Shown here in pieces: positions 4,098 to 30,169 of a stretch of 34,060 nucleotides of DNA. The first letter of the stretch is position 1. Every line of letters starts with the position of its first letter. This DNA comes from Macrostomum lignano (Eukaryota). A program made the position numbers and the translations under genes. The DNA lies in NCBI GenBank assembly GCA_002269645.1, contig NIVC01003884.1, forward strand, positions 37,748-71,807. The letters are read 5' to 3'. The notes beneath the pieces were generated by a model. The model made no database searches. It was not told the DNA's origin and saw only the letters and a list, made by a program, of their open reading frames with translations.

Positions 4098-4109
4098 AAA
4101 AAGGTTAAA

Positions 4110-6847: not shown

Positions 6848-6853
6848 TTTATT
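6848..6853 (-). promoter_or_regulatory. Putative polyadenylation signal of SSUH2-like gene
   Basis: AATAAA on the minus strand about 35 nt after the stop codon. Confidence 0.55.
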
Positions 6854-6887
6854 AACGACCATGCAGCGATCTTATTTGTTACTTCAC

Positions 6888-7242: not shown

Positions 7243-7306
7243 CTGGAATGATGACAGCGATTTGATTGAATCGACGCGGGCGAAAGATTAAAGAAAAAAT
7301 AGTGAA

Positions 7307-7917: not shown

Positions 7918-7945
7918 GTTCAGTTCACATAAACTGAAAACTCAC

Positions 7946-8409
7946 AATCGGACGGTGAGCTGCATGTAGCGCTGCAGTTTGCCCTTTCCCAGGCAGGCCT
8001 TGCAGTGCAGGTGGCCGACCCCGGTGCAGTAGGGGCAGCCGTACTCCCCGGTCTCGTTGCACTCGTGACACGCGTGCCGGCCGTACACCGCCTGCGACGG
8101 AAACTCCAGTCGGCGGCTGCCAGGCCCGGCGAAGTCACCGCCGAAGCAGGTATCGCAGTCGGCGCGGCCGCTGCCGTGACAGGCGACGCACACCTGCCAG
8201 CCGCGCCCGTTGCAGGCGGAGCAGAGGATCACCCTGGCCGTGCCCGGGATGGCCACGCGCTGCTCGGAGCTCTCGAACGGCCTGCCGCCCGGTCGGCACT
8301 CGATGTCCCACAGCGACTGCGGGAACTGCCGGCAGGCGTTCTTCAAGTTCTCTAGCGGCTCCACGGCCGAGTGAACGTTGCGGGTCTCGACGTACGTGTC
8401 TAGCGAGTA
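7946..8409 (-). CDS. SSUH2: SSUH2-like protein, exon 3 (CxxCxGxG zinc-finger repeats)
   Basis: Acceptor gtccgcag|TAC, donor CGATT|gtgagt. YSLDTYVETR...LWDIEC...CSACNGRGWQVCVACHGSGRADCDTC...CHECNETGEYGCPYCTGVGHLHCKACLGKGKLQRYMQLTVR. Confidence 0.88.
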
Positions 8410-8817
8410 CTGCGGACAGCGGGCAGGCTTGAGCTCTCAGACTCCGAATGCACTCCTCAAAATCTCCCATAACTTTGAGAGCTTTAATCTCTTTGGTAAT
8501 GAGGCATCGAAAGCAGAGAAATTTTACATTCGTCTTAATTCTCTACTGCAGAGACTCGTCCATCATCTATCATTTTTCAAGCTCTAAAGTGATGTCGTTC
8601 ATGTGAAATTTCCCTTGAGAGGCGACGAGCTAGCCAAGTGGCAAAGTGACTGGTTGGCCGCATTACCCCCTCCCGAGTTGTTATAAAATTTACGACGAAA
8701 AGTAAACCCGGAAATTCCGAAGAACCTTGCACCCCACTGAACTTGATGTATCTCTCTATTCTAATCTGGTATTCCACCTGAACCAGTGCGGCTGTGCAAC
8801 CCGCAGACTCCACCAAC

Positions 8818-8947
8818 CTGGAAAGCCCTCCGCTGGCTGATATTCCGGAATTTAATCTCTTTGATCTTGCCGCCGCACAGCAGGAAGTGCCTCCTGGCCC
8901 AGGCCTTCAAAGCGAGCCGGCACTCGTCTTCAGTGGCGGGGCTCAGA
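8818..8947 (-). CDS. SSUH2: SSUH2-like protein, exon 2
   Basis: Acceptor aacttgcag|T, donor TTCCAG|gttggt (phase 0, matches exon 3). LSPATEDECRLALKAWARRHFLLCGGKIKEIKFRNISQRRAFQ resembles SSUH2 TEEVAREAL... Confidence 0.8.
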
Positions 8948-9915
8948 CTGCAAGTTTGATTAAATGAGGGTTGAGCGCAGGTGAAAATTACTGTTAAACA
9001 AATTAATAACATATAGGCTAATTATAGGTAGCATTAGTTACGTGTCCTACAGTAGAGAACTCAAATTAGATTTGCTTTTCATCTGAACAACTGCGAGTTG
9101 ACAAAAATAATCCCTCTGAAAAGTGAAACCAATTTTCAGTCGCTAGCAACAAAGGGTGACAGAAAGCTACCCTTAAAAATAGCTGTAACTGCACACAGCT
9201 CGCCTAACGAGAGCAGGAGCGGCTCACAGTGAGGAAAAACACGGAGTAGAAGACGGAACAGAGAGGGCTGGCCTACAACTGCCTACACGCCCTCACTGGG
9301 AGCCCCAGCTGTTGGTTGTCAAAGCAACACCGACAGAGTAGAGAGGGGAGATGCAAAAGCCTGAGCATGCACGGCCGCAGGAAATTGGCTTTGAGTTGCT
9401 CAAGAGAGTACAAATCCAGCGCACGCGCCTCTCGCATGCCTTCATTCCCTATTCAAAAGTTCCCAACTCAGATCTCCGGTTCTCGTGCGCCTAAGGGAAG
9501 GACATTGCGTAGCAAACGGGTACTCTTCAAAATAGTGAAAAACATTTTCCCTAGTATAGTAGAGAGAGAAGTAGGGGACACCGGAATCCAGTTCATTCCA
9601 GTTGACACGGTCGCGGTTTGAGGGGGTGGCGCGGCGACTGTGTTTATTACGACTGGGGGCGTGGCGTGCGGTCCTGGGGCTGGACGGGATTGATGGCCCC
9701 GGAATGGTGGATTTTTTTCATTTTTTGCTTGCGGAGAGCTCGGCCCGCCCACCACCCTGGGAGCGGAAGCGGCACTGTTTGCCAAGCCGGCAGCCAAGAG
9801 TACTTATTCGGTACAGACCCCCGACCAGGCTGATGCAGCTCAACTGCTTGCACAATATTGCGCAATGTCTCTATTGAGTCAGAGTAGTGCAAGAACTGCT
9901 ACACGCTTTCAGAAA

Positions 9916-9990
9916 CAACCAACCAACCAACCAACCAACCAACCAACCAACCAACCAACCAACCAACCAACCAACCAAACCAACCAACCA
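9916..9990. repeat. (AACC)n microsatellite in SSUH2 intron 1
   Basis: About 18 AACC units. Confidence 0.95.
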
Positions 9991-10046
9991 ATTAGCTAAC
10001 CAAACAATAAAACAAGCAAAAAACTAAAAAGGCAGCCAAGCATCAC

Positions 10047-10273
10047 CTGCACAACGCGGCACCAAAGCAGGACTCATTAGCCGAGGTGGTGCTCATCAGG
10101 GACTCCGCACAGGACACCCGGTAGTCGGGCAGTCGCAGGTTGTTATCGAAGTCGCCGCAGCCGGAGTCGCAGTCGTCGTCTTCCGCTTCGTCGTCCCGCT
10201 GGAAGGAGATTTTTCGTCTGCCTCGGCGTTCCACGATGCCGCAGTCGAGGTTGTCAAAGTTTGGCGACTCCAT
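10047..10273 (-). CDS. SSUH2: SSUH2-like protein, probable exon 1 (acidic N-terminus)
   Basis: gccATGG start context; donor TGCAG|gtgatg is phase 2, matching the exon 2 acceptor. Four exons total 227+130+464+355 = 1176 nt, an open 391-aa frame. Assignment rests on phase and codon style, not on recognised homology. Confidence 0.62.
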
Positions 10274-10811
10274 GGCAGCAGGCGTCTTCTGTTCTCAACT
10301 GGCTCAAAATCCTCTGGCCTCCCTCGCTGCGAATTCATTCAGATTCCCTTTTTATTGGGGAAATCGCTCCGTGCAATGGGCGGTGCGTGAGTGGGAGGGT
10401 GCACGCCGGCCAGGGAGAATAGCGGAGGAACTTGGGGTGGGCGTCCGGTCGGTTGCTGGGCGGGTCCCGGGGCGGTTTCTGGCAATTTGCGTACCTACCC
10501 TCTCTCGGGGCAAGGCGGCTCTGCACTCCCCAAGCCTACACCGCGCACTGAAGGAGGAAGGGAGCCAATTGACAGGGGGAAACCCGCCAATCTGAGGGCA
10601 ACGCTATCACTGACGGGGCAAGTGCACTACAATGTAGTTAGAACGCTCGTGGCCTCAGCTGTTTAAACACTAAGTCCTCTACTATAGTGGAATGTGAAAA
10701 TTAACTTATGAAAATGAAATAAATTAAAATTCCCTTAAGTATAGTTATAAAATCGTTTTTCAACTTTACAGCGTTATTTTGAACTACCGCAGATACAAAA
10801 ACTGGAAACAA

Positions 10812-11465
10812 ATCTAGATCTTTACATCCTTTATCTAGACCTCCACATCCCCAAGCTAGATCTCCACATCCCCTATCTAGATCTCCACATCCCCCATTAA
10901 TTATAGATCTCCGGGTCCAAGATCTCCACATCCTCAATCTAAAATACGAGCTCGTAGATTTCCACATCCCCAATCGGCATCGACAGGAAGATTTTGACAT
11001 CCCCAATCGGCATCGACAGGAAGATTTTGACATCCCCAATCGGCATCGACAGGAAGATTTTGACATCCCCAATCGGCATCGACAGGAAGATTTTGACATC
11101 CCCAATCGGCATCGACAGGAAGATTTTGACATCCCCAATCGGCATCGACAGGAAGATTTTGACATCCCCAATCGGCATCGACAGGAAGATTTTGACATCC
11201 CCAATCGACATGCAGATCTCGACATCCCCAATCGACATGCAGATCTCGACATCCCCAATCGACATGCAGATCTCGACATCCCCAATCGACATGCAGATCT
11301 CGACATCCCCAATCGACATGCAGATCTCGACATGCCCAATCGAAATGCAGATCTCGACATGCCCAATCGACATGCAGATCTCGACATCCCCAATCGACAT
11401 GCAGATCTCGACATCCCCAATCGACATGCAGATCTCGACATCCCCAATCGACATGTAGATCAGCA
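10812..11465. repeat. Compound minisatellite: about 4 degenerate 21-bp, 7 x 33-bp and about 9.5 x 27-bp units sharing an ACATCCCC core
   Basis: 33-mer ggcatcgacaggaagattttgacatccccaatc; 27-mer gacatgcagatctcgacatccccaatc; 21-mer tctagatctccacatcccc-like. Confidence 0.93.
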
Positions 11466-12084
11466 TACCCACAATTCAGAAGTAAGCATACAACCCACTG
11501 CATGCACACGACACAAACTGGTCCACCGTTCCATTAGCTCCAAGCCAGTCTAAATTTAACCGCAGAATCTATTTTTTGTCCCACAGTCCTTTCAAGTCCG
11601 CTTAATTCCTCCTGATATGCAGACTGTAAACAGGCTAAAATGTGAAGCGCTGTCGCGAACGGCTGTGCATGTCCGGGATCGGGGATCAGGTCTCCGCGGC
11701 GTCGCGTTGGGAAATATTGCCCTCTTACCCTGTTAATGATCCCTGACGCCATTGTGACCAAACCAATTTTGTTTTGACTTCATAACAGCGGCGATCCAGG
11801 ACGCAGTTCTGCGCTGGGCAGCGACAATACGACTATTTTAAAAGGCTGACTTATTTATCGTAAACACGCCACCGGCATAAACGGGCTTTCGGGAAAGCCA
11901 GCTCGCGTGCGTAAGCCGGCTGGAGGCTCCCTCCGTGTTTTTCTGGATATTTCACAAAACGGCACTATGACGAAATAAATATCACGCGACTCTCTACGTA
12001 ATTAGCAAGGTGGGCTTTTTATAGCTCGCACTCTACGTCTGTTCAATAATATTTGCGATTTAGATATTGACTGCTGCTTGCCGG

Positions 12085-12570
12085 CTGTCTTCTCTCCCAC
12101 ATCTCCCTCTCACCTCTCCCTCCCACCTCTCCTTCTCACCTCTCCTTCTCACCTCTCCCTCTTAATCACCCTCTCACCTCTCCCTCTTAATCACCCTCTC
12201 ACCTCTCCCTCTCTCTCTCACCTCTCCCTCTTAATCACCCTCTCACCCCTCTCACCCCTCTCACCTCTCCGTCTCATCTCTCCTTCTCACCTCTCCCTCT
12301 CACCTCTTCTTCTCACCTCTCCCTCTCACCTCTTCTTCTCACCTCTCCCTCTTAATCACCCTCTCACCCCCTCTCACCCCCTCTCACCCCCTCTCACCTC
12401 TCCCTCTTACTCACCCTCTCTCTCTCAATTCTCCCTCTCACCTCCCTCTCTTAATCACCCTCTCACCTCTCCCTCTCACCTCTCCCTCTCACCTCTCCCT
12501 CTCACCTCTCCCTCTCACCTCTCCCTCTCACCTCTCCCTCTCACCTCTCCCTTTCATCTTTCCCTCTCAG
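12085..12570. repeat. CT-rich degenerate repeat (CTCTCACCTCTCC / CTTAATCACC)
   Basis: Polypyrimidine tract with recurrent 13-bp-like units. Confidence 0.9.
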
Positions 12571-13267
12571 TCTTCATACTCATATGTTAGCTCACAATGT
12601 CAATGTCACAACGCCGCAAGTCAGCCGCTCAGTGCACACACACACACACACAAACGTGCACGAGGCACTTATTGGCCAAGTGTGCAAAAACTTGCACATA
12701 TTGGGACTGCTCCGACACACGAAAAATCACACACACACACGTCCCCACACAGGCAATTTTCAACCCACCAAATAGATTTTTATTGACAACATGCTTTTGG
12801 CTTACTGAAAACAGTTGGAAAGCATTTTTCGAGGTGCATTGAACTCACAACAGATTGTACATGTATACTTGTCTAAAACAGAATTAAAAAACCCTGGTGT
12901 CTTGCTGAATTCCACTAAGGCAATAATATCAGCACGTCAAATTTCACCAGATAATTTCAGCGATCATAGATTATAGAAGACAGGATGGTAAATGGCAAGG
13001 GACTTTAAGGTTATCGAAGACAAACGACATTGACACATATCAAAAAAATTTTACGATCTGAATAAACAAAATTTGCTACATTTAGTGCCACTGGGAAAAA
13101 ACAATTCTGTAGCGAAACTCCACTGTTCATAAAAATGTACTTTATTGATTATGACACAATCACTAGAATTACTCAAAAGGTACATGTCAGCTATTCGGAC
13201 CCACAGAATGCTACGTAAAAGGATGCGGAAATGAACCACACTATAGCAGAAGCCAGCACACACTATA

Positions 13268-13563
13268 GTATGGGGCTGTCCCAACAATTTCACCATAGCC
13301 AGTGTGGATAGGGCTGTCCCAACAATTCCACCATAGCCAGTGTGGATAGGGCTGTCCCAACAATTCCACCATAGCCAGTGTGGATAGGGCTGTCCCAACA
13401 ATTCAACCATAGCCAGTGTGGATAGGGCTGTCCCAACAATTCCACCATAGCCAGTGTGGATAGGGCTGTCCCAACAATTCAACCATAGCCAGTGTGGATA
13501 GGGCTGTCCCAACAATTCCACCATAGCCAGTGTGGATAGGGCTGTCCCAACAATTCCAGCATA
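13268..13563. repeat. 38-bp minisatellite (ccatagccagtgtggatagggctgtcccaacaattcca), about 7.5 copies
   Basis: Period 38 confirmed (13293 to 13331); no spacers. Confidence 0.96.
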
Positions 13564-13635
13564 GCTTGAAAAAGAATATACACAAATACTATAAAAAGCA
13601 AATGCTAGAGCTCTACCGCGGTCATTGCACCGGAT

Positions 13636-13641
13636 TTTATT
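13636..13641 (-). promoter_or_regulatory. Putative polyadenylation signal of the exon-array gene
   Basis: AATAAA on the minus strand about 120 nt after TAA at 13762. Confidence 0.4.
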
Positions 13642-13761
13642 AGAAACAGACTGCAAAAAATGCGTCCTCTAAATAATATTCCAGTGAAGCACACAGCAGT
13701 TAATCGGCTTCTCGATTCAGAAAATTAAAAAAATAACCAGCTCCGCCAAAAAACTCATGAA

Positions 13762-13785
13762 TTAACTGACTGCTGCACAGATAGC

Positions 13786-13827
<42 letters not shown>

Positions 13828-13949
13828 GGCTTGTGAGCAGCAAGTGAACCAAATGACGGATGCAGCGGCGAGATCAGAATGCTCGCTGCTGATCGTTAAA
13901 GCGCATTCTTGTCTCTTAGGCATGTCGCTGGCGTTGCTGACTTCAGAAT
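13762..13949 (-). CDS. Unique terminal exon of the array gene
   Basis: Same acceptor as the array exons; SEVSNASDMPKRQE...FTCCSQ(A)16ICAAVS*, in frame, followed by non-repeat sequence and AATAAA. Confidence 0.5.
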
Positions 13950-16900
13950 CTGCGAGGAAAAGAAATCAATTAAGATAGGCTTGCATTAGTAATCATTAAT
14001 AGGCTATAAAGGAACCCTTTAATAGAACGTGTTCAACTAATGCTGGGTCTGTTTTGAAAAGTCAGAACTCAGAAGTAGTCGCGATTAGAATCAGTATTGT
14101 CCCAATAAGTGCGACCCAACAAATGCTGTTCAAAAAATAGGCCTGGCTGCAATTTCCCAATAAATGCCCAACAAATTACTAGCCTTGAGCTAGGCTGGGC
14201 TGTGTTTACTATTCAATGCGTTTGTAGCTTGTGTCCCAACAATGCCACTGAGATTGTTGCATTGCTTTTCAATTGTGCTCTACCAAGTAACACAAGTACT
14301 CTGGTGTACAATACTTCTACAGCAGATAATACTCACCCAAAACAGATCGTCTCTTTCTCTTTAATCCTGTGCCGGACGGGTTTTCTTCAGATCCACCAGA
14401 AAATTCACAAATAGACTGACTGCCTGCACGGATAGCGGCTGCTGCTGCTGCGGCTTGTGAGCAGCAAGTGAACCAAATGACGGATGCAGCGGCGAGATCA
14501 GAATGCTCGCTGCTGATCGTTAAAGCGCATTCTTGTCTCTTAGGCATGTCGCTGGCGTGGCTGACTTCAGAATCTGCGAGGAAAAGAAATCAATTAAGAT
14601 AGGCTTGCCTTTAGTAATCATTAATAGGCTATAAAGGAACCCTTTAATAGAACGTGTTCAACTAATGCTGGGTCTGTTTTGAAAAGTCAGAACTCAGAAG
14701 TAGTCGCGATTAGAATCAGTATTGTCCCAATAAGTGCGACCCAACAAATGCTGTTCAAAAAATAGGCCTGGCTGCAATGTCCCAATAAATGCCCAACAAA
14801 TTACTAGCCTTGAGCTAGGCTGGGCTGTGTTTACTATTCAATGCGTTTGTAGCTTGTGTCCCAACAATGCCACTGAGATTGTTGCATTGCTTTTCAATTG
14901 TGCTCTACCAAGTAACACAAGTACTCTGGTGTACAATACTTCTACAGCAGATAATACTCACCCAAAACAGATCGTCTCTTTCTCTTTAATCCTGTGCCGG
15001 ACGGGTTTTCTTCAGATCCACCAGAAAATTCACAAAGAGACTGACTGCCTGCACGGATAGCGGCTGCTGCTGCTGCGGCTTGTGAGCAGCAAGTGAACCA
15101 AATGACGGATGCAGCGGCGAGATCAGAATGCTCGCTGCTGATCGTTAAAGCGCATTCTTGTCTCTTAGGCATGTCGCTGGCGTGGCTGACTTCAGAATCT
15201 GCGAGGAAAAGAAATCAATTAAGATAGGCTTGCCTTTAGTAATCATTAATAGGCTATAAAGGAACCCTTTAATAGAACGTGTTCAACTAATGCTGGGTCT
15301 GTTTTGAAAAGTCAGAACTCAGAAGTAGTCGCGATTAGAATCAGTATTGTCCCAATAAGTGCGACCCAACAAATGCTGTTCAAAAAATAGGCCTGGCTGC
15401 AATGTCCCAATAAATGCCCAACAAATTACTAGCCTTGAGCTAGGCTGGGCTGTGTTTACTATTCAATGCGTTTGTAGCTTGTGTCCCAACAATGCCACTG
15501 AGATTGTTGCATTGCTTTTGAATTGTGCTCTACCAAGTAACACAAGTACTCTGGTGTACAATACTTCTACAGCAGATAATACTCACCCAAAACAGATCGT
15601 CTCTTTCTCTTTAATCCTGTGCCGGACGGGTTTTCTTCAGATCCACCAGAAAATTCACAAATAGACTGACTGCCTGCACGGATAGCGGCTGCTGCTGCTG
15701 CGGCTTGTGAGCAGCAAGTGAACCAAATGACGGATGCAGCGGCGAGATCAGAATGCTCGCTGCTGATCGTTAAAGCGCATTCTTGTCTCTTAGGCATGTC
15801 GCTGGCGTGGCTGACTTCAGAATCTGCGAGGAAAAGAAATCAATTAAGATAGGCTTGCCTTTAGTAATCATTAATAGGCTATAAAGGAACCCTTTAATAG
15901 AACGTGTTCAACTAATGCTGGGTCTGTTTTGAAAAGTCAGAACTCAGAAGTAGTCGCGATTAGAATCAGTATTGTCCCAATAAGTGCGACCCAACAAATG
16001 CTGTTCAAAAAATAGGCCTGGCTGCAATGTCCCAATAAATGCCCAACAAATTACTAGCCTTGAGCTAGGCTGGGCTGTGTTTACTATTCAATGCGTTTGT
16101 AGCTTGTGTCCCAACAATGCCACTGAGATTGTTGCATTGCTTTTCAATTGTGCTCTACCAAGTAACACAAGTACTCTGGTGTACAATACTTCTACAGCAG
16201 ATAATACTCACCCAAAACAGATCGTCTCTTTCTCTTTAATCCTGTGCCGGACGGGTTTTCTTCAGATCCACCAGAAAATTCACAAAGAGACTGACTGCCT
16301 GCACGGATAGCGGCTGCTGCTGCTGCGGCTTGTGAGCAGCAAGTGAACCAAATGACGGATGCAGCGGCGAGATCAGAATGCTCGCTGCTGATCGTTAAAG
16401 CGCATTCTTGTCTCTTAGGCATGTCGCTGGCGTGGCTGACTTCAGAATCTGCGAGGAAAAGAAATCAATTAAGATAGGCTTGCTTTAGTAATCATTAATA
16501 GGCTATAAAGGAACCCTTTAATAGAACGTGTTCAACTAATGCTGGGTCTGTTTTGAAAAGTCAGAACTCAGAAGTAGTCGCGATTAGAATCAGTATTGTC
16601 CCAATAAGTGCGACCCAACAAATGCTGTTCAAAAAATAGGCCTGGCTGCAATGTCCCAATAAATGCCCAACAAATTACTAGCCTTGAGCTAGGCTGGGCT
16701 GTGTTTACTATTCAATGCGTTTGTAGCTTGTGTCCCAACAATGCCACTGAGATTGTTGCATTGCTTTTCAATTGTGCTCTACCAAGTAACACAAGTACTC
16801 TGGTGTACAATACTTCTACAGCAGATAATACTCACCCAAAACAGATCGTCTCTTTCTCTTTAATCCTGTGCCGGACGGGTTTTCTTCAGATCCACCAGAA

Positions 16901-19900
16901 AATTCACAAAGAGACTGACTGCCTGCACGGATAGCGGCTGCTGCTGCTGCGGCTTGTGAGCAGCAAGTGAACCAAATGACGGATGCAGCGGCGAGATCAG
17001 AATGCTCGCTGCTGATCGTTAAAGCGCATTCTTGTCTCTTAGGCATGTCGCTGGCGTGGCTGACTTCAGAATCTGCGAGGAAAAGAAATCAATTAAGATA
17101 GGCTTGCTTTAGTAATCATTAATAGGCTATAAAGGAACCCTTTAATAGAACGTGTTCAACTAATGCTGGGTCTGTTTTGAAAAGTCAGAACTCAGAAGTA
17201 GTCGCGATTAGAATCAGTATTGTCCCAATAAGTGCGACCCAACAAATGCTGTTCAAAAAATAGGCCTGGCTGCAATGTCCCAATAAATGCCCAACAAATT
17301 ACTAGCCTTGAGCTAGGCTGGGCTGTGTTTACTATTCAATGCGTTTGTAGCTTGTGTCCCAACAATGCCACTGAGATTGTTGCATTGCTTTTCAATTGTG
17401 CTCTACCAAGTAACACAAGTACTCTGGTGTACAATACTTCTACAGCAGATAATACTCACCCAAAACAGATCGTCTCTTTCTCTTTAATCCTGTGCCGGAC
17501 GGGTTTTCTTCAGATCCACCAGAAAATTCACAAAGAGACTGACTGCCTGCACGGATAGCGGCTGCTGCTGCTGCGGCTTGTGAGCAGCAAGTGAACCAAA
17601 TGACGGATGCAGCGGCGAGATCAGAATGCTCGCTGCTGATCGTTAAAGCGCATTCTTGTCTCTTAGGCATGTCGCTGGCGTGGCTGACTTCAGAATCTGC
17701 GAGGAAAAGAAATCAATTAAGATAGGCTTGCTTTAGTAATCATTAATAGGCTATAAAGGAACCCTTTAATAGAACGTGTTCAACTAATGCTGGGTCTGTT
17801 TTGAAAAGTCAGAACTCAGAAGTAGTCGCGATTAGAATCAGTATTGTCCCAATAAGTGCGACCCAACAAATGCTGTTCAAAAAATAGGCCTGGCTGCAAT
17901 GTCCCAATAAATGCCCAACAAATTACTAGCCTTGAGCTAGGCTGGGCTGTGTTTACTATTCAATGCGTTTGTAGCTTGTGTCCCAACAATGCCACTGAGA
18001 TTGTTGCATTGCTTTTGAATTGTGCTCTACCAAGTAACACAAGTACTCTGGTGTACAATACTTCTACAGCAGATAATACTCACCCAAAACAGATCGTCTC
18101 TTTCTCTTTAATCCTGTGCCGGACGGGTTTTCTTCAGATCCACCAGAAAATTCACAAAGAGACTGACTGCCTGCACGGATAGCGGCTGCTGCTGCTGCGG
18201 CTTGTGAGCAGCAAGTGAACCAAATGACGGATGCAGCGGCGAGATCAGAATGCTCGCTGCTGATCGTTAAAGCGCATTCTTGTCTCTTAGGCATGTCGCT
18301 GGCGTGGCTGACTTCAGAATCTGCGAGGAAAAGAAATCAATTAAGATAGGCTTGCTTTAGTAATCATTAATAGGCTATAAAGGAACCCTTTAATAGAACG
18401 TGTTCAACTAATGCTGGGTCTGTTTTGAAAAGTCAGAACTCAGAAGTAGTCGCGATTAGAATCAGTATTGTCCCAATAAGTGCGACCCAACAAATGCTGT
18501 TCAAAAAATAGGCCTGGCTGCAATGTCCCAATAAATGCCCAACAAATTACTAGCCTTGAGCTAGGCTGGGCTGTGTTTACTATTCAATGCGTTTGTAGCT
18601 TGTGTCCCAACAATGCCACTGAGATTGTTGCATTGCTTTTGAATTGTGCTCTACCAAGTAACACAAGTACTCTGGTGTACAATACTTCTACAGCAGATAA
18701 TACTCACCCAAAACAGATCGTCTCTTTCTCTTTAATCCTGTGCCGGACGGGTTTTCTTCAGATCCACCAGAAAATTCACAAAGAGACTGACTGCCTGCAC
18801 GGATAGCGGCTGCTGCTGCTGCGGCTTGTGAGCAGCAAGTGAACCAAATGACGGATGCAGCGGCGAGATCAGAATGCTCGCTGCTGATCGTTAAAGCGCA
18901 TTCTTGTCTCTTAGGCATGTCGCTGGCGTGGCTGACTTCAGAATCTGCGAGGAAAAGAAATCAATTAAGATAGGCTTGCTTTAGTAATCATTAATAGGCT
19001 ATAAAGGAACCCTTTAATAGAACGTGTTCAACTAATGCTGGGTCTGTTTTGAAAAGTCAGAACTCAGAAGTAGTCGCGATTAGAATCAGTATTGTCCCAA
19101 TAAGTGCGACCCAACAAATGCTGTTCAAAAAATAGGCCTGGCTGCAATGTCCCAATAAATGCCCAACAAATTACTAGCCTTGAGCTAGGCTGGGCTGTGT
19201 TTACTATTCAATGCGTTTGTAGCTTGTGTCCCAACAATGCCACTGAGATTGTTGCATTGCTTTTGAATTGTGCTCTACCAAGTAACACAAGTACTCTGGT
19301 GTACAATACTTCTACAGCAGATAATACTCACCCAAAACAGATCGTCTCTTTCTCTTTAATCCTGTGCCGGACGGGTTTTCTTCAGATCCACCAGAAAATT
19401 CACAAAGAGACTGACTGCCTGCACGGATAGCGGCTGCTGCTGCTGCGGCTTGTGAGCAGCAAGTGAACCAAATGACGGATGCAGCGGCGAGATCAGAATG
19501 CTCGCTGCTGATCGTTAAAGCGCATTCTTGTCTCTTAGGCATGTCGCTGGCGTGGCTGACTTCAGAATCTGCGAGGAAAAGAAATCAATTAAGATAGGCT
19601 TGCTTTAGTAATCATTAATAGGCTATAAAGGAACCCTTTAATAGAACGTGTTCAACTAATGCTGGGTCTGTTTTGAAAAGTCAGAACTCAGAAGTAGTCG
19701 CGATTAGAATCAGTATTGTCCCAATAAGTGCGACCCAACAAATGCTGTTCAAAAAATAGGCCTGGCTGCAATGTCCCAATAAATGCCCAACAAATTACTA
19801 GCCTTGAGCTAGGCTGGGCTGTGTTTACTATTCAATGCGTTTGTAGCTTGTGTCCCAACAATGCCACTGAGATTGTTGCATTGCTTTTGAATTGTGCTCT

Positions 19901-21303
19901 ACCAAGTAACACAAGTACTCTGGTGTACAATACTTCTACAGCAGATAATACTCACCCAAAACAGATCGTCTCTTTCTCTTTAATCCTGTGCCGGACGGGT
20001 TTTCTTCAGATCCACCAGAAAATTCACAAAGAGACTGACTGCCTGCACGGATAGCGGCTGCTGCTGCTGCGGCTTGTGAGCAGCAAGTGAACCAAATGAC
20101 GGATGCAGCGGCGAGATCAGAATGCTCGCTGCTGATCGTTAAAGCGCATTCTTGTCTCTTAGGCATGTCGCTGGCGTGGCTGACTTCAGAATCTGCGAGG
20201 AAAAGAAATCAATTAAGATAGGCTTGCTTTAGTAATCATTAATAGGCTATAAAGGAACCCTTTAATAGAACGTGTTCAACTAATGCTGGGTCTGTTTTGA
20301 AAAGTCAGAACTCAGAAGTAGTCGCGATTAGAATCAGTATTGTCCCAATAAGTGCGACCCAACAAATGCTGTTCAAAAAATAGGCCTGGCTGCAATGTCC
20401 CAATAAATGCCCAACAAATTACTAGCCTTGAGCTAGGCTGGGCTGTGTTTACTATTCAATGCGTTTGTAGCTTGTGTCCCAACAATGCCACTGAGATTGT
20501 TGCATTGCTTTTGAATTGTGCTCTACCAAGTAACACAAGTACTCTGGTGTACAATACTTCTACAGCAGATAATACTCACCCAAAACAGATCGTCTCTTTC
20601 TCTTTAATCCTGTGCCGGACGGGTTTTCTTCAGATCCACCAGAAAATTCACAAATAGACTGACTGCCTGCACGGATAGCGGCTGCTGCTGCTGCGGCTTG
20701 TGAGCAGCAAGTGAACCAAATGACGGATGCAGCGGCGAGATCAGAATGCTCGCTGCTGATCGTTAAAGCGCATTCTTGTCTCTTAGGCATGTCGCTGGCG
20801 TGGCTGACTTCAGAATCTGCGAGGAAAAGAAATCAATTAAGATAGGCTTGCTTTAGTAATCATTAATAGGCTATAAAGGAACCCTTTAATAGAACGTGTT
20901 CAACTAATGCTGGGTCTGTTTTGAAAAGTCAGAACTCAGAAGTAGTCGCGATTAGAATCAGTATTGTCCCAATAAGTGCGACCCAACAAATGCTGTTCAA
21001 AAAATAGGCCTGGCTGCAATGTCCCAATAAATGCCCAACAAATTACTAGCCTTGAGCTAGGCTGGGCTGTGTTTACTATTCAATGCGTTTGTAGCTTGTG
21101 TCCCAACAATGCCACTGAGATTGTTGCATTGCTTTTGAATTGTGCTCTACCAAGTAACACAAGTACTCTGGTGTACAATACTTCTACAGCAGATAATACT
21201 CACCCAAAACAGATCGTCTCTTTCTCTTTAATCCTGTGCCGGACGGGTTTTCTTCAGATCCACCAGAAAATTCACAAATAGACTGACTGCCTGCACGGAT
21301 AGC

Positions 21304-21338
<35 letters not shown>

Positions 21339-24300
21339 AGCAGCAAGTGAACCAAATGACGGATGCAGCGGCGAGATCAGAATGCTCGCTGCTGATCGTT
21401 AAAGCGCATTCTTGTCTCTTAGGCATGTCGCTGGCGTGGCTGACTTCAGAATCTGCGAGGAAAAGAAATCAATTAAGATAGGCTTGCTTTAGTAATCATT
21501 AATAGGCTATAAAGGAACCCTTTAATAGAACGTGTTCAACTAATGCTGGGTCTGTTTTGAAAAGTCAGAACTCAGAAGTAGTCGCGATTAGAATCAGTAT
21601 TGTCCCAATAAGTGCGACCCAACAAATGCTGTTCAAAAAATAGGCCTGGCTGCAATGTCCCAATAAATGCCCAACAAATTACTAGCCTTGAGCTAGGCTG
21701 GGCTGTGTTTACTATTCAATGCGTTTGTAGCTTGTGTCCCAACAATGCCACTGAGATTGTTGCATTGCTTTTGAATTGTGCTCTACCAAGTAACACAAGT
21801 ACTCTGGTGTACAATACTTCTACAGCAGATAATACTCACCCAAAACAGATCGTCTCTTTCTCTTTAATCCTGTGCCGGACGGGTTTTCTTCAGATCCACC
21901 AGAAAATTCACAAATAGACTGACTGCCTGCACGGATAGCGGCTGCTGCTGCTGCGGCTTGTGAGCAGCAAGTGAACCAAATGACGGATGCAGCGGCGAGA
22001 TCAGAATGCTCGCTGCTGATCGTTAAAGCGCATTCTTGTCTCTTAGGCATGTCGCTGGCGTGGCTGACTTCAGAATCTGCGAGGAAAAGAAATCAATTAA
22101 GATAGGCTTGCTTTAGTAATCATTAATAGGCTATAAAGGAACCCTTTAATAGAACGTGTTCAACTAATGCTGGGTCTGTTTTGAAAAGTCAGAACTCAGA
22201 AGTAGTCGCGATTAGAATCAGTATTGTCCCAATAAGTGCGACCCAACAAATGCTGTTCAAAAAATAGGCCTGGCTGCAATGTCCCAATAAATGCCCAACA
22301 AATTACTAGCCTTGAGCTAGGCTGGGCTGTGTTTACTATTCAATGCGTTTGTAGCTTGTGTCCCAACAATGCCACTGAGATTGTTGCATTGCTTTTGAAT
22401 TGTGCTCTACCAAGTAACACAAGTACTCTGGTGTACAATACTTCTACAGCAGATAATACTCACCCAAAACAGATCGTCTCTTTCTCTTTAATCCTGTGCC
22501 GGACGGGTTTTCTTCAGATCCACCAGAAAATTCACAAATAGACTGACTGCCTGCACGGATAGCGGCTGCTGCTGCTGCGGCTTGTGAGCAGCAAGTGAAC
22601 CAAATGACGGATGCAGCGGCGAGATCAGAATGCTCGCTGCTGATCGTTAAAGCGCATTCTTGTCTCTTAGGCATGTCGCTGGCGTGGCTGACTTCAGAAT
22701 CTGCGAGGAAAAGAAATCAATTAAGATAGGCTTGCTTTAGTAATCATTAATAGGCTATAAAGGAACCCTTTAATAGAACGTGTTCAACTAATGCTGGGTC
22801 TGTTTTGAAAAGTCAGAACTCAGAAGTAGTCGCGATTAGAATCAGTATTGTCCCAATAAGTGCGACCCAACAAATGCTGTTCAAAAAATAGGCCTGGCTG
22901 CAATGTCCCAATAAATGCCCAACAAATTACTAGCCTTGAGCTAGGCTGGGCTGTGTTTACTATTCAATGCGTTTGTAGCTTGTGTCCCAACAATGCCACT
23001 GAGATTGTTGCATTGCTTTTGAATTGTGCTCTACCAAGTAACACAAGTACTCTGGTGTACAATACTTCTACAGCAGATAATACTCACCCAAAACAGATCG
23101 TCTCTTTCTCTTTAATCCTGTGCCGGACGGGTTTTCTTCAGATCCACCAGAAAATTCACAAATAGACTGACTGCCTGCACGGATAGCGGCTGCTGCTGCT
23201 GCTGGCTTGTGAGCAGCAAGTGAACCAAATGACGGATGCAGCGGCGAGATCAGAATGCTCGCTGCTGATCGTTAAAGCGCATTCTTGTCTCTTAGGCATG
23301 TCGCTGGCGTGGCTGACTTCAGAATCTGCGAGGAAAAGAAATCAATTAAGATAGGCTTGCTTTAGTAATCATTAATAGGCTATAAAGGAACCCTTTAATA
23401 GAACGTGTTCAACTAATGCTGGGTCTGTTTTGAAAAGTCAGAACTCAGAAGTAGTCGCGATTAGAATCAGTATTGTCCCAATAAGTGCGACCCAACAAAT
23501 GCTGTTCAAAAAATAGGCCTGGCTGCAATGTCCCAATAAATGCCCAACAAATTACTAGCCTTGAGCTAGGCTGGGCTGTGTTTACTATTCAATGCGTTTG
23601 TAGCTTGTGTCCCAACAATGCCACTGAGATTGTTGCATTGCTTTTGAATTGTGCTCTACCAAGTAACACAAGTACTCTGGTGTACAATACTTCTACAGCA
23701 GATAATACTCACCCAAAACAGATCGTCTCTTTCTCTTTAATCCTGTGCCGGACGGGTTTTCTTCAGATCCACCAGAAAATTCACAAATAGACTGACTGCC
23801 TGCACGGATAGCGGCTGCTGCTGCTGCGGCTTGTGAGCAGCAAGTGAACCAAATGACGGATGCAGCGGCGAGATCAGAATGCTCGCTGCTGATCGTTAAA
23901 GCGCATTCTTGTCTCTTAGGCATGTCGCTGGCGTGGCTGACTTCAGAATCTGCGAGGAAAAGAAATCAATTAAGATAGGCTTGCTTTAGTAATCATTAAT
24001 AGGCTATAAAGGAACCCTTTAATAGAACGTGTTCAACTAATGCTGGGTCTGTTTTGAAAAGTCAGAACTCAGAAGTAGTCGCGATTAGAATCAGTATTGT
24101 CCCAATAAGTGCGACCCAACAAATGCTGTTCAAAAAATAGGCCTGGCTGCAATGTCCCAATAAATGCCCAACAAATTACTAGCCTTGAGCTAGGCTGGGC
24201 TGTGTTTACTATTCAATGCGTTTGTAGCTTGTGTCCCAACAATGCCACTGAGATTGTTGCATTGCTTTTGAATTGTGCTCTACCAAGTAACACAAGTACT

Positions 24301-27016
24301 CTGGTGTACAATACTTCTACAGCAGATAATACTCACCCAAAACAGATCGTCTCTTTCTCTTTAATCCTGTGCCGGACGGGTTTTCTTCAGATCCACCAGA
24401 AAATTCACAAATAGACTGACTGCCTGCACGGATAGCGGCTGCTGCTGCTGCGGCTTGTGAGCAGCAAGTGAACCAAATGACGGATGCAGCGGCGAGATCA
24501 GAATGCTCGCTGCTGATCGTTAAAGCGCATTCTTGTCTCTTAGGCATGTCGCTGGCGTGGCTGACTTCAGAATCTGCGAGGAAAAGAAATCAATTAAGAT
24601 AGGCTTGCTTTAGTAATCATTAATAGGCTATAAAGGAACCCTTTAATAGAACGTGTTCAACTAATGCTGGGTCTGTTTTGAAAAGTCAGAACTCAGAAGT
24701 AGTCGCGATTAGAATCAGTATTGTCCCAATAAGTGCGACCCAACAAATGCTGTTCAAAAAATAGGCCTGGCTGCAATGTCCCAATAAATGCCCAACAAAT
24801 TACTAGCCTTGAGCTAGGCTGGGCTGTGTTTACTATTCAATGCGTTTGTAGCTTGTGTCCCAACAATGCCACTGAGATTGTTGCATTGCTTTTGAATTGT
24901 GCTCTACCAAGTAACACAAGTACTCTGGTGTACAATACTTCTACAGCAGATAATACTCACCCAAAACAGATCGTCTCTTTCTCTTTAATCCTGTGCCGGA
25001 CGGGTTTTCTTCAGATCCACCAGAAAATTCACAAATAGACTGACTGCCTGCACGGATAGCGGCTGCTGCTGCTGCGGCTTGTGAGCAGCAAGTGAACCAA
25101 ATGACGGATGCAGCGGCGAGATCAGAATGCTCGCTGCTGATCGTTAAAGCGCATTCTTGTCTCTTAGGCATGTCGCTGGCGTGGCTGACTTCAGAATCTG
25201 CGAGGAAAAGAAATCAATTAAGATAGGCTTGCTTTAGTAATCATTAATAGGCTATAAAGGAACCCTTTAATAGAACGTGTTCAACTAATGCTGGGTCTGT
25301 TTTGAAAAGTCAGAACTCAGAAGTAGTCGCGATTAGAATCAGTATTGTCCCAATAAGTGCGACCCAACAAATGCTGTTCAAAAAATAGGCCTGGCTGCAA
25401 TGTCCCAATAAATGCCCAACAAATTACTAGCCTTGAGCTAGGCTGGGCTGTGTTTACTATTCAATGCGTTTGTAGCTTGTGTCCCAACAATGCCACTGAG
25501 ATTGTTGCATTGCTTTTGAATTGTGCTCTACCAAGTAACACAAGTACTCTGGTGTACAATACTTCTACAGCAGATAATACTCACCCAAAACAGATCGTCT
25601 CTTTCTCTTTAATCCTGTGCCGGACGGGTTTTCTTCAGATCCACCAGAAAATTCACAAATAGACTGACTGCCTGCACGGATAGCGGCTGCTGCTGCTGCG
25701 GCTTGTGAGCAGCAAGTGAACCAAATGACGGATGCAGCGGCGAGATCAGAATGCTCGCTGCTGATCGTTAAAGCGCATTCTTGTCTCTTAGGCATGTCGC
25801 TGGCGTGGCTGACTTCAGAATCTGCGAGGAAAAGAAATCAATTAAGATAGGCTTGCTTTAGTAATCATTAATAGGCTATAAAGGAACCCTTTAATAGAAC
25901 GTGTTCAACTAATGCTGGGTCTGTTTTGAAAAGTCAGAACTCAGAAGTAGTCGCGATTAGAATCAGTATTGTCCCAATAAGTGCGACCCAACAAATGCTG
26001 TTCAAAAAATAGGCCTGGCTGCAATGTCCCAATAAATGCCCAACAAATTACTAGCCTTGAGCTAGGCTGGGCTGTGTTTACTATTCAATGCGTTTGTAGC
26101 TTGTGTCCCAACAATGCCACTGAGATTGTTGCATTGCTTTTGAATTGTGCTCTACCAAGTAACACAAGTACTCTGGTGTACAATACTTCTACAGCAGATA
26201 ATACTCACCCAAAACAGATCGTCTCTTTCTCTTTAATCCTGTGCCGGACGGGTTTTCTTCAGATCCACCAGAAAATTCACAAAGAGACTGACTGCCTGCA
26301 CGGATAGCGGCTGCTGCTGCTGCGGCTTGTGAGCAGCAAGTGAACCAAATGACGGATGCAGCGGCGAGATCAGAATGCTCGCTGCTGATCGTTAAAGCGC
26401 ATTCTTGTCTCTTAGGCATGTCGCTGGCGTGGCTGACTTCAGAATCTGCGAGGAAAAGAAATCAATTAAGATAGGCTTGCCTTTAGTAATCATTAATAGG
26501 CTATAAAGGAACCCTTTAATAGAACGTGTTCAACTAATGCTGGGTCTGTTTTGAAAAGTCAGAACTCAGAAGTAGTCGCGATTAGAATCAGTATTGTCCC
26601 AATAAGTGCGACCCAACAAATGCTGTTCAAAAAATAGGCCTGGCTGCAATGTCCCAATAAATGCCCAACAAATTACTAGCCTTGAGCTAGGCTGGGCTGT
26701 GTTTACTATTCAATGCGTTTGTAGCTTGTGTCCCAACAATGCCACTGAGATTGTTGCATTGCTTTTGAATTGTGCTCTACCAAGTAACACAAGTACTCTG
26801 GTGTACAATACTTCTACAGCAGATAATACTCACCCAAAACAGATCGTCTCTTTCTCTTTAATCCTGTGCCGGACGGGTTTTCTTCAGATCCACCAGAAAA
26901 TTCACAAATAGACTGACTGCCTGCACGGATAGCGGCTGCTGCTGCTGCGGCTTGTGAGCAGCAAGTGAACCAAATGACGGATGCAGCGTTGTAAATGCAG
27001 GATGCAGGATGATTGG
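13762..27016 (-). CDS. Putative 22-exon gene segment encoding a tandem-repeat protein (79-aa unit with poly-Ala, Cys and KRKRR); 5' exons not found
   Basis: Each unit has acceptor tttcttttcctcgcag|AT and donor TTG G|gtgagt bounding a 237-nt stop-free phase 1/1 exon (e.g. 14573-14337). Entry exon 27016-26834 (183 nt, phase 1/1); terminal exon 13949-13762 ending in TAA. One copy carries a +1 indel at 23203. No homology recognised and no expression evidence. Confidence 0.55.
13766..26988. repeat. Tandem array of about 21.2 x 624-bp near-identical units
   Basis: Equivalent positions at 14109, 14734, 15359, 15984, 16608 ... 25981, 26606 (spacing 624/625, one of 636). Only a handful of variant sites distinguish the units. 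Confidence 0.98.
26834..27016 (-). CDS. Unique entry exon of the array gene
   Basis: Different acceptor (atttacaacag|CC), also phase 1; NHPASCIYN-AASVIWFTCCSQ...KRKRRSVL; 183 nt, a multiple of 3. Confidence 0.45.
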
Positions 27017-28774
27017 CTGTTGTAAATTAATTGATAAATAAGGTGATCGTGCCGCCTCTCTTATATTTCACTGAGCTCAGAGTATTACTAGGCTGCTTAT
27101 TATTTTTTTCAACGTACAAAAAATACGACATATACGAGTACGAGACAATACTTACTGGACAATGAAGGCAAATCTGTTTGTTATAGAAGAAAACGGTAGC
27201 TTATCGATATCAACGTATCTGGAATTTTAGAAAAGTACATATGTAAATTCCAGTTAAGTTTTTATTTAATCATAAAATTTTAAAAAGAATTTTAAATTCT
27301 ACTTACATATGTGTAATGGTTCCTAGCCAAGTCTTTTCATGCCAGGTCATGCATGGAAACTCTTGTGACGTGGCACATTTTGTCTGTGTAGTGCAGGTCT
27401 CGTAAATGAATTATATTCGCTTGAACATATGCAGTACCGCCAGTACGCCGTTTGTCAAAGGGAACTTCTACATGTACCTTTCCGTTAGAATTGGCTCTTC
27501 CTCTTGTAGGCCTCAACTTCAGTGTAAACTTTATCCCGACTCCCTTGCGCCCGCCTCTCCTCCCCGCTTCCCCCCGCCGCGATAGGAATGTACGCGTGGC
27601 CTGGGTAAGGGATTGCCTGGGTCTTGTACACGCTTGTCCTAACACTTCTGCACTGTACGTGGGTTTATCTTTACGATCCAAGATAAGCAGAATTGTTTTC
27701 CAGGAAGGCCTAGTAGTTAGTTTTGGGCCAAACTAGTCATCGATTTCGACTTTACAGTGACAGTGACACGCAAACATGTGCTAGCAGTCCATGCAGTCAT
27801 CTTAAGTTTCTTGGTATCTCAGTACATTTCAGTATACCAGACGATAATTATCATAATTCTAGGAAAAATTTTTCTACATAGTATAGCTGCCCAAACCCAG
27901 GCCAATAAGGAAGTCATTTAAAGCCTTAGAGATTAAACGTTTCCCTCTAATACTCGTCCTCGGTTTTCTCGGGAAATGCAAAGTTTTTCTTTGCCCTTTA
28001 TTTCTTTGCTCTAAAAGCGCTTCATAAGACTGTGAGAATTTCCACCGGAAAACTACCTCACTCAAAGTGTCACTTTACGTTAATGGCCTCCAGTCACTAA
28101 CTTGAGTCAGTTAATACCCATTCACATATGACAAATAGATTAATGCAGCTGACTGAAAACGAGAATTTCAGTTAAAATGGCCGAGGGCACAGGCGGATGT
28201 AACCTTAATTTGCCATGTTTCGTGTATAAGTGAAATTGGAAGCTAATGAATTTAGATGCTAGCTGTTTCTATGCAAAAATCTAAATATACTAAATCTATA
28301 AGGTTTGTATGCTTGATTGTAATATTCTAAATCTGTATTAAATTATTTCATATTTAGTAAACACGATGCCAAATGTCAGTGGATCCTTTCAAGTGTTGAT
28401 TGGCAGCCCTGTAGGGAACCTTTATCTGTTACTTGTAGTAGACTTTCTTGATATTGTAAGAAATATTGTAATAAAACGAGAATTCCGATTTGAGACCCAA
28501 TTGTTCTGTTGGATCAGACCATCAGTTCGCATAATTTTTTAAACTTCTTAGGACACTGCAAATCATTAGATTCCCCGTGTTTGATTAAAAATATGAAAAA
28601 ATGACATTGATTTTTGAAAGGAGAATCGAAAGACGGTTCCAATGAATATTTTTTCATTTCAATAGAATTCATTTTTGGAAGTGTCGGGACGCACTTATTG
28701 GGCCTGGCCCAACACATTTTTGGTCCTAATAGCACGGGTCAGTTTATACACGCTTGTCCGAAGAAATGCCTAAT

Positions 28775-28983
28775 GCACAAACACGCAGTCATACGCACAG
28801 GCACACACTCACACAGGAGTGTACAGCGGCCCTAACTTTATTTACCGTTAGGCATGTACACTTCATTGCACGAGCAGAGCCAAGCCGAGATTCCAATTTA
28901 ACCCCAAATTTAATGCGACTTTGAATCGACCCTGGGCCGCTGGCACATTGGCACTCCGCGCTCGACCACTAGGGTGCGGCCCC
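28775..28983 (-). mobile_element. tRNA-derived SINE, copy 1
   Basis: Head GGGGCCGCACCCTAGTGGTCGAGCG...CCAGGGTCGATTCAAA with degenerate A- and B-boxes; body shared with the copy at 33285-33525. Confidence 0.75.
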
Positions 28984-29017: not shown

Positions 29018-29027
29018 CAACAACAAT

Positions 29028-29069
<42 letters not shown>

Positions 29070-29110
29070 AACAATAACAACAATAACATCAAAACAACAA
29101 CAACAACAGT

Positions 29111-29191
<81 letters not shown>

Positions 29192-29200
29192 AATAATAAT

Positions 29201-29234
<34 letters not shown>
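29018..29234. repeat. (AAC)n microsatellite (LINE 3' tail)
   Basis: About 70 AAC/AAT units abutting the LINE 3' end. Confidence 0.95.
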
Positions 29235-29235
<1 letters not shown>

Positions 29236-29827
29236 AATACGCGTTCAGCGTCACAGGGCGCGCCTCAAGGCCAAGTCGCCAGCCGAATCCGGTGCGCCGG
29301 CGTCAGCCAGCAGGCAGACGGTGCCTGCAACGGTGCCTGCAGCGTCAGCAGCAGCACCTGCTGCATCGGCTCTGTGCAGTACAACTCGGCGCGGATGATG
29401 TGGCCTGCCAGCTGGAGTCGCCGACGGCGCAACAGGTCGCTTGGACGGACCAGGCCGGTGCGGTGATACAAAGCCGCGTTGGTCACTCGCTCGTAGCCGA
29501 TCTTGAAGGCAGCGCGCAGCTGGCCAGCGTGCGCCGCGTCAACTTGTTGCTCGAGCGACTCCGTCAGCGTCCAGGTCTCGGCGTTGTACAGCAGGACGGT
29601 CTCGATCACCGCCTAGAACAACGCCTTTCTCTGGTCTCGGACTGCAGGACTGCCCTCGCAGAACGAAAGGCAGCCCAGGCAAGCCCGCGGCGACGCCGCA
29701 AATCCACGCGGACGCCGGGAACCAGACCGCTGAGGTAGACGAACTGCTGAGAACGCGGAAGCTCTGTCGCCTGTCCATCAGCGCCTCGGCACAAAATCGC
29801 AGCCTCGATGTCGTCCGGCACGCAGAG
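29020..29827 (-). mobile_element. 5'-truncated, frameshifted RTE-type non-LTR retrotransposon with (TTG)n tail
   Basis: QQFVYLSG...RRGLAWAAF and ETVLLYNAETWTLT...LRAAFKIGYERVTNAALYHRTG...RRRRLQLAGHIIR are the post-RT motifs typical of RTE/CR1-type LINEs. Imperfect 10-bp flanking repeat cgcaatctca (29010-29019) / cgcaatatca (29828-29837). Confidence 0.85.
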
Positions 29828-30169
29828 CGCAATATCAGAAACATAAACTTGAAATCAACAAGCTAATACGAGCTATTTACCCATTTTTAATCCTTAGCGG
29901 AGTTTAATCTTTAATCCTAAGGACAGCTAACTTCATGTCGACTATAACCAGACGCAACGAATATTTTTGCAGCATTTACATGTAAGCCCAACGAGACTAT
30001 TTCCACAGGTGAGCTTATATGAAGTTTACTCGTGGACAGCCTAAGGTGAAGCGTAAAGGTGCTCACAGTTTGATCAAGTTCTTACGGCAAATTTTGGGCA
30101 TCAACTACAAATTAGGCATGTATATAAATAAGTAAATGAAACAAAACCGTAATTAGCGAAGTAAAATGT

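Follow-up and report, generated by a model that had tools for sequence, protein, structure and literature searches.

Is the long tandem array that lies on the minus strand of a Macrostomum lignano contig a gene for a giant repetitive protein, or a repeat that merely looks like one? The stretch analysed, here called the window, comprises 34,060 nt of assembly GCA_002269645.1 (Mlig_3_7; contig NIVC01003884.1, positions 37,748 to 71,807 of the forward strand), and positions are counted from its first letter. An initial annotation, made from the sequence of the window, described a 624-bp unit that carries a 237-nt exon between splice signals, and proposed a gene amplified exon by exon whose 22 exons would encode a protein of about 1,700 residues. 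The array is probably a young, M. lignano-restricted macrosatellite borne on a transposon, transcribed and spliced, whose open reading frame (ORF) is a neutral by-product of the amplification of one symmetric exon. It is unlikely to be one gene that encodes a protein of about 1,700 residues.

A repeat search identifies 21 head-to-tail copies of the unit, 99-100% identical, between about 13.8 and 27.0 kb of the window. Start-to-start spacing is 624-625 bp with a single exception of 636 bp. The program TRF does not list the array because its longest period is 500, and the 624-bp period was followed instead with a repeat finder and regular-expression scans; the expectation that repeat maskers would discard such an array is shared here. 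The minus-strand acceptor TTTCTTTTCCTCGCAG, of the CGCAG type, and the donor GTGAGTATTATCTGC, of the GTGAGT type, each display 21 exact matches in the window, one per unit, and both agree with the M. lignano splice consensus of GT[G/A]AG and CAG (PMC8629364). Acceptor and donor are thus present in every unit as initially described, while the 237-nt exon length holds for 18 of the 20 internal exons; one exon of 249 nt departs from it and another, of 238 nt, had been missed. One of the three frames of the exon is open and both exon ends are in phase 1, with a junction codon G+AT that encodes Asp, so that the exons are symmetric, all as first proposed; skipping of such exons might in principle yield isoforms that differ in repeat number. 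At the nucleotide level the predicted unit-to-unit junction joins CGATCTGTTTTGG to ATTCTGAAGTC, or to its variant CTTCTGAAGTC, and the unit peptide SEHSDLAAASVIWFTCCSQ is found in the translation of the window. Unit variants are ordered in blocks along the array, which is organised as follows.

26834..27016 (about), minus strand: 5'-most partial exon; array homology begins from unit position 84 (~26987)
14337..26445, minus strand: 20 internal exon-intron units, with exons from 26445-26209 to 14573-14337 and introns of 387-388 nt
23088..23325, minus strand: 238-nt exon, frameshifted by a 1-nt insertion within the GCA run; its ending is ...CCSQASSSSSRYPCRQSVYL (...ASSSSSRYPCRQSVYL), followed by a stop
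21204..21452, minus strand: 249-nt exon, in frame; Gln is replaced by Ala and four extra Ala follow from expansion of the (GCA)n run
13612..13949, minus strand: terminal exon, starting at 13949, with the stop codon TAA at 13764-13762 and AATAAA at 13641-13636

Eleven sister loci, designated L001 onwards and originating from at least eight contigs of the same assembly, were fetched for comparison. The last unit of the window passes into a diverged tail that holds the TAA stop, and relative to the sisters this terminal exon carries a 1-nt deletion leading to an earlier stop (…AICAAVS in place of …AIRAGSQLIDEFSGGAGYFLSF). Together with the 238-nt exon and a 705-bp deletion at the 5' side, described below, this makes three defects in the window copy. 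The ending of the 238-nt exon also occurs in the UniProt models P0007 and P0013, which derive from an independent assembly. At the opposite extremity, the 5'-most partial exon displays an in-frame TAA upstream and no in-frame ATG. Joining the 22 exons of the window gives a conceptual mRNA of 5,274 nt with two ORFs, of 442 residues (exon 2 to 7) and 1,163 residues (exon 8 to 22). With a frameshifted exon and no start codon, the uninterrupted protein of about 1,700 residues is not encoded by this copy.

The array is already represented in protein databases. A three-unit protein query retrieves 25 proteins with significant matches from a search of 5.8 billion proteins, every one of them from M. 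lignano. They include UniProt models from an older, ML2-based annotation and the NCBI models BOX15_Mlig026960g1, Mlig003618g1 and Mlig029855g13; the copies of cluster Mlig029855 are numbered to at least g39 and are distributed over many contigs. Many of the 25 proteins contain the predicted junction, RRSVL/(D or A)/SEVS(H/N). The junction peptide is SVLDSEVSHASDMPK; QECALTISSEHSDLAAASVIWFTCCSQ... and GSQSICEFSGGSEENPSGTGL are peptides of the unit. The NCBI annotation of Mlig_3_7 was built by genome-guided RNA-seq assembly with StringTie/TACO together with de novo transcripts (PMC5730564). When the GTGAGT...CGCAG introns alone are cut from the annotated NCBI gene spans of sister arrays and the remainder is translated, models P0009 and P0005 are recovered residue for residue, and P0004 except for the length of its poly-Ala run. 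The junction predicted by the initial annotation is therefore matched by RNA-seq-guided models and, as far as their annotation indicates, is already in use in sister arrays. Every database model is partial, with 2-5 units each, as is expected from short-read assembly across a repeat. Other UniProt models employ extra GT-AG sites inside the exon (GGCA/GTCAGT, ACCC/GTCCGG and CAGCAG/CGAGC) and read a second frame (SILISPLHPSFGSLAAHKPQQQ...RPAQD, then a stop); these sites may be real minor isoforms or choices of a gene predictor. Several array models are named 'Secreted protein' by UniProt. No description of the repeat, nor of its gene identifiers, was found in the literature and its supplements. 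As a separate observation, models that consist of array sequence only (P0014 and P0020-P0025; UniProt A0A1I8JIZ4 and others) bear the names of unrelated proteins (Dymeclin, UCH domain, BAF250_C and Rho-GAP), which may reflect an element inside those genes in the ML2 annotation or an annotation artefact.

The array does not stand alone but is the internal part of a dispersed element, whose features in the window are listed below.

12656..28778, minus strand: whole dispersed element, 16,123 bp, with its 5' end GTGCATTAGGCATTTC... at 28778 and its 3' end ...CCTCGTGCAC at 12656
28720..28778, minus strand: 5' terminal inverted repeat, imperfect, ~55 nt, recognised by local alignment with the reverse-complemented 3' end
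27017..28719, minus strand: unique 5' part of the element, with splice-like signals and no long ORF with a family match
13273..13565, minus strand: 38-bp minisatellite, 7.7 copies, in the 3' part of the element, with the core TTGTTGGGAC
12656..12715, minus strand: 3' terminal inverted repeat; outside the element follow GTTT and then a (GT)n run

In the sister copies L001-L003 the element measures 8,005-9,831 bp. All fetched arrays whose ends are available share their boundaries and unique flanks: as in the window, the first array position is unit position 84 and the last is about 152-202, and the number of units ranges from 7 (L001) to 18 or more in the sisters, against 21 in the window. The unique sequence common to all loci extends over ~1.8 kb (+0.7 kb) upstream and 1.1 kb downstream with 96-100% identity. 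Past sharp boundaries the flanks are unrelated, with at least six different right and at least five different left contexts. The L003 copy lies within the span of a myosin gene on the same strand, the L002 copy within the span of a TIR_2-domain gene on the opposite strand, and one copy adjoins a cathepsin gene. The alignment of the terminal inverted repeats scores 48, compared with a mean of 23.2 (standard deviation 4.4, maximum 37) for shuffled sequences. Neither long terminal repeats (LTRs) nor long direct terminal repeats are present at the element ends. Pfam returns no match for 27337-27681, the sole long ORF listed in the unique 5' part, and the sole ORF listed in the 3' part (13051-13656) traverses the 38-bp minisatellite. 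GTTT and GT-rich low-complexity or microsatellite sequence occupy both sides of each copy and mask any target-site duplication. The element would belong to a non-autonomous terminal-inverted-repeat type with an internal macrosatellite. The case for its mobility is built on the inverted repeats and the differing flanks, because in the loci covered no target-site duplication was resolved and neither an empty site nor a transposase was found. Non-LTR retrotransposition, considered on account of a variable (TG)n at the 3' side, was set aside in view of the retained introns, the inverted-repeat ends and the GT-rich sequence on both sides. An array of spliced-leader RNA, 5S or tRNA genes was ruled out by empty Rfam and tRNA scans of the window, and the M. 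lignano spliced-leader sequence (PMC8629364) is absent from the unit.

The monomer and its carrier share short motifs. The core TTGTTGGGAC has 50 matches in the window compared with 0.25 expected, all inside the element and in one orientation, distributed between the introns of all array units and the 38-bp minisatellite. Related motifs, CCAATAWGTGC, lie near both element ends and recur in inverted orientation within each intron. This part of the monomer looks as if it had been built from the element's own short repeats. A 24-mer, GTGTGCCTGTGCGTATGACTGCGT, was also observed just outside the 5' end of the element in the window (~28779-28810) and just outside its 3' end in L005 and L009 (right flank). 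A long target duplication, divided among sister copies, or a further repeat used as a preferred target would be possible explanations.

Whether the reading frame is maintained was assessed on 124 exons and 133 introns extracted from ten arrays, an exon being considered broken when its length is not divisible by three or when it contains a stop. By this definition 34 of the 124 exons are broken. A TGG to TAG change converts Trp into a stop in 11 of the 16 units of L011, and one identical 1-nt deletion (…ENPSAQD, then a stop) is present in 6 units of L004. Since both variants are common to many units of one array, they are real homogenised variants rather than read errors. Every array with six or more exons contains at least one broken exon, with the sole exception of the partial array L010, and L010 excepted the number of broken exons per sister array ranges from 1 to 13. 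The arrays are homogenised, with array-specific variants that distinguish one from another. Counting only variants present in two or more units, the exon displays 12 variable sites in 237 nt (5.1%), with 11 nonsynonymous changes, one of them nonsense, and 2 synonymous ones, and the intron 13 variable sites in 387 nt (3.4%). Outside the GCA run, indels affect 3 exon positions compared with about 10 intron positions. At this low divergence and with these small counts, the variation looks like a pattern of neutral evolution with no coding constraint. The view of the locus as a gene amplified exon by exon consequently survives in part: the units are spliced as exons in the available models, while the broken ORFs, the neutral-looking variation and the dispersed element speak against a gene.

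All seven sister loci whose 5' side could be read carry a 705-bp segment (L001 6193-6897) that separates the upstream flank from the first partial exon; in the window this segment is deleted. It carries an acceptor, CACAG followed by GTTCATCC (L001 6889/6890), and the UniProt models P0023-P0025 begin exactly at this acceptor (VHPHSNSPLHPSF...). In M. lignano the last three nucleotides of the spliced leader are ATG (PMC8629364). Joined to the GTTCATCC acceptor, this ATG would open an alternative frame, MVHPHSNSPLHPSFGSLAAHKPQQQ… (VHPHSN...), with a stop within the first exon. If the acceptor were trans-spliced, translation would thus open the second frame and not the long one. Apart from the Met that each unit contains, the long frame has no start in any copy, and no N-terminal start or signal exon was found.

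The unit peptide, DSEVSHASDMPKRQECALTISSEHSDLAAASVIWFTCCSQAAAAAAAIRAGSQS(L/I)CEFSGGSEENPSGTGLKRKRRSVL, has its Met at residue 10 and includes four Cys as well as two dibasic motifs, PKR and KRKRR. Its hydrophobic, signal-like stretch, LAAASVIWFTCCSQAAAAAAAI, is moderate, with a Kyte-Doolittle maximum of 1.5 over 19 residues. The initial annotation had not recognised this peptide, and wider searches lead to the same result: a single unit has no match in Pfam, the 5-unit P0001 gives only scattered Pfam matches, none significant alone, which are read as repeat artefacts, and a sequence search of PDB with the unit returns no relative. AlphaFold2 applied to 2.5 units yields a mean pLDDT (predicted local distance difference test) of 42 and no confident fold. 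Homologues outside M. lignano are found neither in the 5.8-billion-protein search nor in an exhaustive profile-free search of 1.84 billion representatives, whose sole non-flatworm-like match, P0045 (E=3e-4), was rejected as an unrelated repeat protein. Within the species, a diverged unit, P0044 (UniProt A0A1I8FV09), is 47% identical, open, ends in GLKRKRRSVL and is spliced to a canonical unit. P0044 has no encoding contig on record, is in none of the fetched loci and has no further relatives; its sequence points to an older subfamily or a source gene.

These observations can be combined in the explanation that is favoured here. The carrier would be a non-autonomous mobile element with imperfect terminal inverted repeats, of 8-16 kb depending on unit number, and its 624-bp monomer would consist of the 237-nt phase-1/phase-1 exon and a 387-nt intron to which a short repeat motif of the element contributed part of the sequence. 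The exon most likely descends from the initial coding exon of a secreted protein, with a short leader, an ATG, the hydrophobic stretch and a phase-1 donor; introns that follow signal peptides are known to favour phase 1. Tandem duplication of such a signal-type exon would generate frame symmetry without selection for a giant protein. The unit would then have been amplified and homogenised by unequal crossing-over, and cis-splicing of adjacent units would produce a continuous frame as a by-product. The frame runs on across units because the 27-nt leader contains no stop and the exon length is divisible by three, a coincidence roughly estimated at about one in five. With the frame not maintained by selection, nonsense and frameshift variants accumulate and spread, and the window copy has lost its 5' exon region. 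The fetched arrays would all descend from one ancestral array, and any products translated from the Met of a unit would presumably not amount to a conserved functional protein.

Several points weigh against this explanation. A 79-codon open exon of 3n length that has strong splice sites and encodes a Met, a hydrophobic stretch and the KR/KRKRR motifs resembles a real secreted polyprotein. Most units are intact (90 of 124), and some arrays are nearly clean, with 19 of 20 units intact in the window and 6 of 6 in L010. The substitution counts are small and the copies only 2-4% diverged, so that weak purifying selection could escape detection. Mlig_3_7 is based on PacBio reads and some single-unit indels could be sequencing errors, although variants common to several units cannot. 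Finally, the argument for transcription and splicing of the array draws on the provenance of the annotation, and the proposed mobility has no resolvable target-site duplication, empty site or transposase behind it.

The rival that survives best, and which is still unlikely, is a real gene family encoding a secreted repetitive polyprotein. Furin-like cuts after PKR and KRKRR would release four-Cys peptides of ~58 residues, copy number would be quick to evolve, and the broken copies would be pseudogenes of a multigene family. The single open frame, the symmetric phase and the Met, hydrophobic stretch and dibasic motifs of each unit are what such a family would display, as are the spliced models, some of them carrying the UniProt name mentioned above, and the diverged P0044 unit, which at 47% identity retains both its open frame and its GLKRKRRSVL end. 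However, a precursor of this kind would need an N-terminal start or signal exon, which is found in no copy, and the spliced-leader ATG at the first-exon acceptor reads the other frame. A hydrophobic stretch in every unit is odd for a cleaved precursor. The neutral-looking substitutions, the homogenised nonsense and frameshift variants, the broken exons in every array of six or more exons except L010 and the lack of homologues outside the species also oppose it.

Improbable, and ranked next, is a purely non-coding satellite, present in RNA through read-through or host introns and only occasionally spliced; its transcripts would be long non-coding RNA or be subject to nonsense-mediated decay, and nothing would be translated. 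Such a satellite would naturally vary neutrally and carry broken frames, elements do lie within host gene spans on either strand (myosin, same; TIR_2, opposite) and all models are partial. In contrast, strong consensus donors and acceptors are maintained in all 21 units of the window and in nearly all of the 133 sister introns, multi-exon models agree exactly with the junction, and the stop codon is followed ~120 nt downstream by AATAAA, like a proper 3' end. This rival differs from the favoured macrosatellite explanation only in the translation of any product.

A mobile symmetric-exon cassette that lands in sense in a phase-1 host intron could contribute 79-residue modules in frame to the host mRNA, a form of transposon-driven exon shuffling. 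Phase-1/phase-1 exons with strong sites on a dispersed element are suited to this role, one copy lies in the myosin gene span on the same strand, and host-gene names (Dymeclin, UCH, BAF250_C, Rho-GAP) are attached to array-only models, although these names may be an annotation artefact. Yet no chimeric host and array protein occurs among the database matches and the NCBI array transcripts are annotated apart from the myosin gene, which leaves exonisation as a general explanation very improbable. That the array or its copy number is an artefact of mis-assembled long noisy reads is scarcely credible: the arrays of L005, L007, L009, L010 and L011 lie at contig ends and single-unit indels are common, but the same array with the same boundaries recurs in at least eight Mlig_3_7 contigs, derived proteins are also present in the independent ML2-based UniProt set, and the unit variants of the window stand in ordered blocks, as in a real array.

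The surroundings of the element are themselves rich in repeats. Positions 4118-4580 hold 38.7 copies of the 12-mer CAAAACCCTAAC, which contains the telomere-type CCCTAA (TTAGGG on the other strand) and may represent either a telomere-like minisatellite in an interstitial position or the mark of a subtelomeric region. Unrelated micro- and minisatellites with periods of 4, 8, 12, 13, 22, 27, 33, 38, 47 and 56, several of them longer than 400 bp, occupy 1-13565 and 33853-34046. Such dense flank satellites are consistent with the 15% share of simple and tandem repeats in the M. lignano genome (PMC5730564). A Cys-rich ORF with repeated CxxCxGxG-type motifs lies on the minus strand at 7942-8364 and 6888-7352 and shows weak, sub-threshold Pfam matches to DnaJ_CXXCXGXG, GRXCR1-2_C and BSD2_CRD. 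This ORF probably belongs to a host gene, as one of its exons, downstream of the element and in the same orientation, and may resemble SSUH2-like proteins. On the other side of the array, a (CAA)73 run at 29018-29235 adjoins an ORF at 29265-29832 (…LLYNAETWTLTESLEQQ…RRRRLQLAGHIIRAE…) with no Pfam match, which presumably resembles the C-terminal part of non-LTR retrotransposon ORF2 proteins. Positions 29332-29832 are 85% identical to L001 18513-19026, a match that identifies this segment as another dispersed repeat.

The array combines features of exon variable number tandem repeats (VNTRs), transposons with internal satellites and ORF-bearing macrosatellites. The kringle IV-2 (KIV-2) repeat of human LPA is an exon-intron VNTR in a gene that possesses both a start and a signal peptide, encodes a conserved domain fold and has an intact ORF maintained by selection. 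Both systems comprise one or more whole exons plus an intron per unit, symmetric phases and a copy number that varies between alleles or loci; unlike LPA, the M. lignano array has no defined start, an ORF interrupted in almost every array, neutral-looking variation, an orphan peptide and a mobile element as its apparent carrier. Transposons with internal tandem arrays include Drosophila Tetris, foldback elements, DINE-TR1 Helitrons, bivalve 'pearl' elements and human SVA. These are likewise dispersed, with defined ends, a length that varies via the internal array and an array that derives partly from their own short motifs, here the TTGTTGGGAC core. Their internal repeats, however, are not spliced exon and intron units with an open frame, whereas annotated M. 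lignano transcripts splice unit to unit. The ORF-bearing macrosatellites D4Z4/DUX4 and RS447/USP17 share with the array long monomers, high within-array identity, a variable copy number and a coding potential that is difficult to assess, but they hold a complete gene per unit; the M. lignano unit is one exon and its ORF arises only after splicing across units. Dibasic-processed polyprotein precursors, such as neuropeptide and antimicrobial-peptide precursors and the notothenioid antifreeze glycoprotein (AFGP) genes, also display identical peptide units between KR/KRKRR motifs, amplified from a small ancestral segment. In contrast to these, no N-terminal signal exon was found for the M. lignano array, which contains a hydrophobic stretch inside every unit and gives no signal of conservation or selection.

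A broader reading is that a mobile element is amplifying and spreading a cassette of phase-symmetric, efficiently spliced exons, which in some copies has very recently become, within M. lignano, a fast-evolving secreted polyprotein of variable copy number or is exonised in frame into host genes. It is unlikely; if true, transposon-mediated exon birth and shuffling would have been caught early, in nature. As for the favoured macrosatellite explanation, its first consequence concerns annotation. Current gene sets list the array as dozens of incomplete 'hypothetical protein' genes, among them Mlig029855.g1 to at least g39, and gene counts are inflated as a result; recognition as one transposon-borne spliced macrosatellite would clean up the annotation of M. 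lignano. The array would also provide a tractable case of how a spliceable ORF arises and spreads without selection for a protein, a question relevant both to the de novo birth of genes and to the shuffling of exons by mobile elements. With transgenesis, RNA interference and rich RNA-seq data available in M. lignano, these questions are directly testable.

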